Of a stretch of DNA of 64,000 nucleotides, positions 49,501-52,500 are shown piece by piece. The notes under the pieces are model-generated. The model searched no databases, was not told the origin of the DNA, and saw nothing but the letters and a program-made list of their open reading frames with translations. The stretch is from Aplysia californica. Its lineage: Eukaryota. Each line of letters starts with the position of its first letter. Position 1 is the stretch's first letter. Where the stretch lies: NCBI RefSeq assembly GCF_000002075.1, contig NW_004797640.1:499550-563549 (forward strand), read 5' to 3'. A program made the translations under genes and the position numbers.

Positions 49501-52500
49501 TCACATCAATATCGTCAGCTTCTTCTTCATCTCCATCACCACCATTATCTACATCGTTGTCTGTATTTGTTGCATCTGCAAGGAAAACAGTAACACTTTT
49601 CTAAAACTGATCTGCGATAGGTATCTATTATTTGAAGGAAAATAAAATGTTCAAATCCACATTAAAACATGTAACGCCAAGTAAGTGAGAAATCAATACA
49701 TGGCATGTCGAACAGGCTGCCTTACACAATGATGATAAAAAAAAAAAAGCTTGGCAAGATAGTTTTGGAGTTTAATTTGAGTAAAGAGAAGCACACTGAC
49801 AAAATAAGTCATTTAGTGCAAGAAACAAGCAAAAAGGACAGACAGAAAAAATGACTTACAAGTGGCACTCCCCCCTTCCTATTCTACCATGCTTTTTCCC
49901 CCTATAACATAATATAGTCTTCAGTACAGGTAAAATCCCCAATGGCAGTCATGCAGACTGAGGAAAAAAAGCAGCATGTCAGAAATTCACTCGTATTAAA
50001 AGTGAGAACTACAAAAATAGGTTGAAATTGGAGCCAAACTCTTCCGCCGTATTAAAAGTGACATTGTGTTATAGGCAAGTGTAAACGATAAGGCGACTCA
50101 AACATTTCGACAACAACCAAAGCGAGACTGACCAGTGGAGGCAGAGAGCACATCCTTGAGAAGTGCCAGCCAGCGAGCCAAGTTGGGGATAGCCAGACAC
50201 TGGAGCAGGGAGTCGATAGTGTCACGCAGGTCAGACAACAGCTGACCGTCTGTCTCTGTGTCCAGCATGCCAAACAGAACACCCTCGAGGCCTGAGGAGA
50301 CAAGAACAGCGTTAATTATTTGTACTTTTTCACACGACTGTCGGCACAATACGGGCAAAATCAGACATAGTATAAATACAGCTTACAATGTCCAACATAT
50401 AACTACTGCCTCCACACAAAGGTATTAACTATAAAATTTTCTTCCACCCATTTAAAGAGGACGGAGATCTGCAACCAAAAGACATACTGCTGAAAAAGAT
50501 GCACAAAAAATATCCACAAGGAGCAGACTACCAAAACAACATGCTGCACACACACACAATAAAAATTCATAGAGAACCCCCACTCCCTCAACCCACACAC
50601 AGACTAGTCTCATCATTCCTTCTTCTTACACACACATACAAATCCCCNNNNNNNNNNNNNNNNNNNNNNNNNNNNNNNNNNNNNNNNNNNNNNNNNNNNN
50701 NNNNNNNNNNNNNNNNNNNNNNNNNNNNNNNNNNNNNNNNNNNNNNNNNNNNNNNNNNNNNNNNNNNNNNNNNNNNNNNNNNNNNNNNNNNNNNNNNNNN
50801 NNNNNNNNNNNNNNNNNNNNNNNNNNNNNNNNNNNNNNNNNNNNNNNNNNNNNNNNNNNNNNNNNNNNNNNATCAACTCCCCTACCCCCACACCCACCCA
50901 CATACCTGTGTCAGCAATATGCGAGTTTGTCTTGGAGTCCTTCCCTTGCCCCACCACCAGTGACAGGGCCAGAGAACTCACGTCCCCGGCCTCCCTGGTG
51001 GCCAGCTGGCGCAGACACGACACCGCCGCACGCCTCAGCAGGAGGTGAGAGCTGCTCAGGTTCTCCTGAAAATAAGTACCACAGGTGAAATGGTATAGGT
51101 ATAACATTCCTCAGAGCTTATCTTTGTATGGGATAAAGCATCATATATGCAATCTATCATTATTATTATCTTTATTATTTGTGCCCTTATCAACACTATT
51201 AGATTATTTAAGAGGTGGGATTTCTGACTATAAAGTCCATCTCCGAAAGGACCGGACACAAAGTCGGACCAAGCTACGGCTCAATCCAAAGTACCAAAGG
51301 GAAACTGACATTACAAATAAACTATCTATTTCAATCATCATGGAGTGCCAGATCCGGAACAGACATCAATGAGCGTGGATTTCCACTCATTTCTCTCTAG
51401 ATTCCACTGCATCGTGACACATTTTATCAGCTTATATGAGATAGCCCAATGATGAATCTGATACCAAAATGAAAAAATTATCTTTATAACGACTCAAAAT
51501 AATCTTACTATTTTTATAGAGCACATAAAACATTTCATTTCTGATCTCTTGGTCTTAGTAACTCAAAACGGCCAAAAATGTCACACAGAACTTGTGTAAT
51601 TCTGAGGTAGCGACTTGTCCCCATGAGAGAGCAATGAGTAAGGGCGTACTTACACAGAGGTGAGGCACCAGGTTGGACAGGTTGAGGTGGCGGGGGGCAA
51701 ACATGTGCAGCTGCTGCAGGCAGGCGATGGCCTCGGCTTGGACCAGCGAGTCGGGGTGGGCCTGCATGACAGCGCAGCACACCAGGCAGTACAGGCGGGC
51801 TGTGCCGATGGCGCTCGAGTTGCCTGCCGAGGTTCAGTTTGAGTCACTTTAGTTTTTGTAAGAGTTTGTTTTTTGTTTCTAGTAAGAACGACTTTTTTGG
51901 TCTTTTCACCCTGTTGCTCAAAAATAGCTTTGCCGACAACTGCAACCTTTCTCCAGGCACACACACAAATGAGAGGTGTGCTGACAAAACGAGTTATTTC
52001 TTGGATTTTAGCCTTATGGAAAGTAATACATCAACATTACTGGTGGAGTTTGTTAAATGTGTAAGTATGGAATAATAAAAGACACGGTATACTTGAAGAA
52101 AATGGCATCAACTGAAAATCTATAAATCTGACCCCAGTGTCAATTTGGGGCTGATATCTCCATTTTTGGATTGCGAGAAGTAATTCGTTTTTATCAGCAT
52201 GCCTAACAAATGTAAAAAAAATTACCAGTTTCCTGCATGGCATCAGCACAGCACCCGACCCACCTTGCAGCTCGTTCAGTTTTAGTAAGAGTTTTACAGC
52301 ACTTACAACACAATAAGGTCACAGTAGTACGAAGATTAGGTTTGACAAGAGAGTAACAAACACAAAAAAGAGGAGGAGAGAGAAGTACGATAGCTATTGA
52401 TATGAAAGAAGGAGCAAACCACACCAGAGCACCCGCCAGCCACCTACCTTGCAGCTCGGGTCCGATGGAGGTGATGAGGGCGGAGAGACACTTGCCCAGG

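Follow-up and report, generated by a model that had tools for sequence, protein, structure and literature searches.

A SINE-Like Retroposon Directly Adjoining a HEATR5 Exon in Aplysia californica and Its Putative Use as a Splice Donor

Introduction

Short interspersed elements (SINEs) are known to insert near the splice sites of animal genes, and well-known outcomes are the exonization of Alu elements and disease-causing insertions at exon borders. A second group of elements, the introners, is described in three reports (PMC9860276, PMC12130899, PMC11282704) as transposable elements that create spliceosomal introns, of which one splice site comes from the element and the other is rebuilt from the duplicated target. 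Recursive splice sites (zero-length exons) and the fungal [D1,2] stwintrons, which are dealt with in a further report (PMC12403724), constitute the third system to be compared here.

In the window, the whole 64,000-nt stretch of Aplysia californica DNA that was analyzed, a short retroposon designated family A, carrying a genuine 11-bp target-site duplication, is placed exactly at the end of an exon of HEATR5. An earlier interpretation made from the letters alone, hereafter the sequence-only reading, had proposed that this element supplies the splice donor of the exon and that it behaved like an introner. In the present study, the locus, the element family, the age of the intron and the choice between two neighboring donors were analyzed computationally.

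Results

Layout of the Locus

The two HEATR5 exons flanking the insertion, denoted A and B, were searched one by one, and the features identified between them are summarized in Table 1. HEATR5 fragments from other animals matched exon A at 87–98% amino-acid identity. The exon is preceded by a strong acceptor and terminates with ...CGAGCTGCAAG at 52448. The family A copy, read on the minus strand, begins with GTAGGTGGCTGGCGGG at 52447, the base directly following exon A, where its opening letters are also given as GTAGGTGGCTGG..., and it ends at 52275 with ...CTTACTAAAACTGAA or, in a longer form, ...ACTAAAACTGAA. The sequence-only reading had claimed that the duplication equals the last 11 coding nucleotides of the exon and that a second donor, GTGGGT at 52263–52258, is located 184 nt downstream; a perfect 11/11 repeat was indeed read at both ends of the element, and the second donor was present as claimed. 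The exons are joined through a split Gly codon, to which exon A gives one base and exon B the other two.

Table 1. Features of the HEATR5 exon A–exon B region (positions in the window).
Feature	Position	Strand	Remarks
HEATR5 exon A	52448–52637	-	190 nt; 63 codons plus first base of the split Gly codon
5′ copy of the target-site duplication (11 bp), CGAGCTGCAAG	52448–52458	-	Comprises the terminal 11 coding nucleotides of exon A
Family A retroposon copy, sense orientation	52275–52447	-	173 nt; 90.8% identity to the 39-copy consensus
Downstream copy of the 11-bp duplication, CGAGCTGCAAG	52264–52274	-	AG at its end
Displaced GTGGGT donor	52258–52263	-	Directly after the second CGAGCTGCAAG; putative decoy 184 nt inside the intron; hexamer equals the family consensus start
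Head-like stretch, GTGGGT then CGGGTGCT	52244–52263	-	Matches the family 5′ end except for a 6-nt gap
Dispersed repeat B	51966–52220	.	Unrelated to family A; inside the same intron
Dispersed repeat C	51888–51971	.	Inside the same intron
Family A 3′-tail-like stretch	51848–51867	-	19/20 bases; ends 22 nt before the acceptor AG
HEATR5 exon B	51654–51823	-	170 nt; after acceptor ...ctcggcag; GTAAGT follows the exon at 51654

Family A Is an Abundant SINE-Like Retroposon

The window contained 25 further matches to this copy, many of which begin exactly at the base aligned with 52447. When the genome (927,310,431 bases in 4332 contigs) was searched, at least 4813 first-look candidates for family A were obtained, and random genome stretches contained approximately one match per 4 kb, which corresponds to a number on the order of 10^5 copies genome-wide. 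The 39 copies fetched for comparison have a common sharp 5′ end, GTGGGTGG... / GTGGGTGGTTGGCGGGTGCT, and a tail ...CTTACTAAAACTAAA of the ACTAAA/ACTGAA type, which contains repeated ACTAAA units in some of them; consensus base 1 was the start in 32 of 66 blast matches. Clean target-site duplications were identified in 24 copies, this one included, and measure 10–22 bp with a mode of 10–12 bp; the usual span in the family is 9–16 bp, one case being called at 22 bp. The 11/11 repeat at HEATR5 lies within this family pattern and is therefore an ordinary mark of insertion. The divergence of the HEATR5 copy from the consensus (Table 1) indicates that the insertion is fairly old.

A fixed 5′ end in many dispersed copies, duplications of variable sequence and ~7–20 bp, and an A-rich or short-tandem-repeat tail, all of which were found for family A, are the features of a LINE-dependent short retroposon, and the ~178-nt family was probably copied via a LINE. 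Such retroposons also have a 3′ end in common with a partner LINE, and what was seen in this respect is a tail-like 20-mer beside repeat C. The strict definition of a SINE additionally includes a head derived from tRNA, 5S or 7SL with an internal polymerase III promoter. An Rfam search of this copy gave no match better than E = 0.38 and no tRNA, 5S or 7SL likeness, and the element is hence termed a SINE-like retroposon. Searches against Pfam and PDB sequences were uninformative for the element and for both exons.

The family consensus starts with GTGGGT, of which the third base varies: most copies carry G there, and ~12% carry A. The sequence-only reading had stated that GTAGGT, the start of the HEATR5 copy, occurs in other copies, and it was found at 55529 and in L020, L027, L033 and L041; among these, L033 shares its first 40 bases with this copy, including the GTAGGTGGCTGG start. 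A GC-rich, exon-like upstream flank was seen in only 1 of the 66 sampled matches, the HEATR5 copy itself. Family A was not found in the small loci of relatives (L001–L009), a sample too small to mean much.

Regarding the arrangement of family A elsewhere, 23 of its 26 matches in the window (this copy counted) lie on the minus strand, which is the HEATR5 strand, giving a strong sense bias; some of the matches are tandem fragments and to that extent not independent. Examples are located at 58755–58578, 56811–56639, 43847–43687 and 17095–16920. Three head-to-tail partial copies of the first ~85 nt of family A occupy 57191–57439 on the minus strand, and a further partial copy at 56196–56302 abuts a full one. 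In a random genome stretch, a family A copy (L065:891–1070) is immediately succeeded by ...TCTCCCCTCGTTCTACAG, which is followed by a GC-rich sequence resembling the start of an exon, so that the tail there probably adjoins an acceptor.

The Intron Position Predates the Insertion

When exon A was used for a word search, 101 short frames from many animals were retrieved, approximately 90 of which are alike through ...GPELQG and unrelated beyond it; a second search gave more frames of the same pattern. Divergence right after GPELQG indicates that these are genomic frames that enter an intron at the same place and in the same phase. One of the relatives (L001) exhibits ...CTAGCAG followed by GTAGGT, a 124-nt AT-rich intron and then ...caag before GCAACTC, all without the element, and in another (L002) the donor context is ...CAAG followed by GTAAGA. 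These observations show that the HEATR5 intron is older than the insertion and that its position is ancient. The sequence-only reading had regarded the downstream GTGGGT as the ancestral donor, and this identification is supported.

The intron in the window is 624 nt long and consists of the element plus duplication (184 nt), ~44 unique bases, repeat B (~52220–51966), repeat C (~51971–51888) and ~64 further bases. Subtraction of the three repeats leaves ~108 nt, near the 124 nt of L001. An empty site that can be aligned was not found in close relatives, of which the nearest fragments share 97–98% protein identity and at most 76.5% DNA identity or are undetectable by blastn. The introns of relatives are not alignable, and only the position, length and donor of the intron were comparable.

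Other parts of this intron are also repetitive. Repeat B is an abundant dispersed element of ~250 nt, with 2217 first-look candidates at 85–90% identity, and it fills the middle of the intron. The 3′-tail-like stretch at 51848–51867 includes a CTTAC branch-like motif, and a second family A tail-like piece is found at ~51874–51887. The former could derive from the tail of repeat C or from that of a 5′-cut copy, and a role as the branch region of the weak acceptor of exon B is possible. An old family A copy was also considered as the ancestral intron itself, on the basis of head-like and tail-like 20-mers at the two intron ends. Three points led to the rejection of this idea: the age of the intron, the lack of any family match between its ends, and the position of the tail piece next to another repeat.

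Only the Upstream Donor Preserves the Conserved Protein

Exon A aligns to residues 46–108 of the orthologue P0111 and exon B to residues 110–165, residue 109 being the split Gly; the orthologue P0060 gave the same outcome. Since residue 109 is this split codon, there is no room for extra residues. Spliced-type orthologues continue directly from ELQG to N(S/T)(G/S)SI.TARL.CLVCCA.MQ, and this collinearity means that only the join of 52448 to 51823 yields the conserved protein. Use of the old donor alone had been said to shift the frame, and it does so, as the 184 nt it adds is 1 mod 3. The shifted frame contains no stop in the element or in exon B, so a premature stop would come later. The GTAGGT at 52447 is hence the predicted working donor as judged from the sequence. 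The A at its +3 position, where the old donor has G, allows one more Watson–Crick pair with U1 snRNA.

The following history probably accounts for these data. A member of family A inserted in sense orientation through staggered cuts that would have spanned the last 11 bases of exon A, at a site expected to have read ...CAAG followed by GTGGGTCGGG. The exon stayed intact and now abuts the start of the element, where GTAGGT (the consensus of the family has GTGGGT) resembles a 5′ splice site in form. The original GTGGGT donor, preceded by the duplicated 11 exon bases, was pushed 184 nt into the intron. Splicing would then proceed from the 52448/52447 boundary to the old acceptor before 51823, leaving the mRNA and protein unchanged and the intron 184 nt longer. 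Taken as a whole, this account, comprising an insertion at the exon end, a GTAGGT that now works as the upstream donor and an unchanged protein, is one that we regard as fairly probable.

Evaluation of Alternative Histories

Such an arrangement could in principle result from misassembly or from a direct repeat that arose by chance. Reads of three polyA RNA runs and of run X1, which behaves as DNA with a flat depth of ~58, were mapped to the locus. An X1 contig covering 52419–53380 with zero differences carries the filled site and crosses the exon/element junction unchanged, and hence this junction is no artefact of this assembly; the X1 individual may or may not differ from the assembled one. 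Two further pieces match the interior of the copy exactly, and no empty allele appeared among the read joints listed, beyond which lie 41 further joints. The right-hand junction (52275/52264) is outside all contig pieces listed, but an insertion predicts exactly what is seen, namely an 11/11 repeat at the exact ends of a family member and at the modal duplication length of the family, so that error or chance is extremely improbable. A more serious alternative arises from the boundary between element and target, which is ambiguous over 6 bases. The consensus start GTGGGT is identical to the hexamer that follows the second repeat, and a 17-bp duplication consequently fits the sequence equally well. 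In such a history, the host's own donor would have been copied within a duplication of 11 exon bases plus GTGGGT, and the element, lacking the first 6 nt of its 5′ end, would have been joined by a 6-nt microhomology between the cDNA end and the donor hexamer, with a later G-to-A change at +3 producing GTAGGT. The element would then supply nothing, and the exact landing would be an outcome of the homology between head and donor. The flank is consistent with this, as it runs on after the old GTGGGT with CGGGTGCT, like the element does after 6 more bases, and when all 129 GTRRGT sites in the window were compared in an anchored manner, only true or probable family copies scored as high as this flank. 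The same match was not significant in an unanchored comparison, where 85 of 500 shuffles reached the score. A length of 17 bp is just past the usual 9–16 bp of the family, for which one 22-bp case was called. The dinucleotide GT comes directly after the 3′ duplication in 4/24 copies as compared with ~1.3 expected, but the excess loses significance when the HEATR5 copy is omitted (3/23), and most other copies exhibit no microhomology (ext = 0 in 18/24); with 200 kb of genome fetched and 24 duplication-bearing copies, this survey is underpowered. The +3 base does not decide between the histories either, since A occurs there in ~12% of copies including L033 and may have arrived with the element. 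Both histories yield identical DNA and cannot be separated from this locus alone; we hold the 17-bp history to be possible though doubtful. The proposal that the element supplies the donor is weakened, in that a host-derived copy of the old hexamer would give the same sequence as the family start; that the conserved frame requires the upstream GT is supported.

The old donor at 52263 might still be used to a real extent, by one of three routes. Direct use would give a transcript that is 184 nt longer, frame-shifted and likely degraded; in a recursive route, the 184 nt from the GT at 52447 through the AG at 52264 would be taken out beforehand, rebuilding CAAG followed by GTGGGT; and this unit could instead be excised in a later step, like a small intron. 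The old donor has remained intact, the 11 nt before it being the same exonic bases, and its survival through ~9% divergence of the element means that it could still compete. The 184-nt unit also possesses a GT, a CTTAC branch-like motif ~22 nt before its AG, and an AG directly followed by GT, and the 10/23 pyrimidines before the AG at 52264 are no worse than the 11/23 of the real acceptor of the intron. Nearby acceptors are much stronger, as exemplified by the 22/23 pyrimidines before exon A, and pairing with U1 slightly favors the upstream donor. Known recursive sites, which combine AG/GT with a strong pyrimidine tract, lie in very long introns, and here AG/GT is accompanied by 10/23 pyrimidines and an intron of only 624 nt, a shortness that makes recursive splicing appear unlikely. 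Recursive splicing would give the same mature mRNA. Altogether, appreciable use of the old donor is considered unlikely.

RNA Reads over the Locus

In the three polyA single-end RNA runs, the depth on exons A and B was zero. In the same runs (X21–X23), the family A copy (52275–52447) was covered at a depth of ~100–200 on both strands, and the silence of the host exons indicates that these element reads originate from family A copies elsewhere, carried within different transcripts. Seventeen other runs contain 0.32–0.39 of the sampled words, and the share of query words confined to the two exons is ~0.29 (~0.34 by bases). These shares fit transcripts that contain the exons only, a weak hint because repeat words were lost from the DNA run too, which contains only 0.79. 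Word searches found no 100% match in records of the own genome, and the 144-aa read-through frame had no exact counterpart when looked up.

Discussion

If the upstream donor is used as we consider fairly probable, the locus would be a clean natural case in which a mobile element replaces the splice donor of a gene while the protein stays unchanged, and it would indicate that an element starting with GT(R)GGT can survive at the one near-exon position where its insertion is harmless. The insertion of a mobile element at a splice donor is a known kind of effect, and the novelty is modest unless a family-wide pattern exceeds what survival gives. A rough estimate was made from ~10^5 5′-intact copies, mostly in sense orientation in genes, and ~25 donors per 61 kb of gene in the window, by which tens of exact coincidences between element and donor are expected by chance genome-wide if such insertions are harmless, as they would be owing to the donor-like element start. 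A single case teaches little, and its value resides in the family-wide question of whether element ends are enriched at splice sites. Enrichment, if any, could reflect aiming, homology-guided joining or survival, and it bears on the growth of introns and on new introns in animals.

A stronger proposition is that family A is built to be harmless at intron borders, with a 5′ end that works as a donor, a tail that serves as the branch-point region and an almost invariable sense orientation. We consider this quite improbable. If true, donor takeover would have occurred repeatedly, duplications ending in AG could found new introns, family A would be a retroposon-type introner in an animal, and the likeness between its head and the old donor would represent homology-guided joining at donors.

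Compared with the mammalian SINE cases, the HEATR5 insertion is alike in being a short LINE-dependent retroposon with target-site duplications that resides in a gene and carries splice-signal-like sequences. It differs in that the signal is the first six bases of the element in sense orientation, and in that the outcome is likely silent instead of a new exon or a defect. With recursive splice sites and stwintrons, it shares an AG/GT at 52264/52263, where removal of the inner unit could rebuild the donor of the outer intron. Unlike those systems, it has a weak pyrimidine tract in a short intron, and the inner unit does not split a donor; stepwise splicing would be hypothetical here. The resemblance to introners is closest in that the family is abundant and that the element end and the duplicated target give GT...AG, so that removing the element plus one copy of the duplication would restore the message. 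In terms of sequence, the GT would be provided by base 1 of the element and the AG by the end of the duplication. Introners arise at positions that are empty in relatives, whereas the HEATR5 intron is common to distant animals, being found after ELQ/G in ~90 fragments and in L001, and the insertion lengthened only its 5′ end. Family A is, moreover, a retroposon and not a cut-and-paste transposon. The introner-like behavior proposed in the sequence-only reading is hence retained as an analogy, as no new intron arose at this ancient position.
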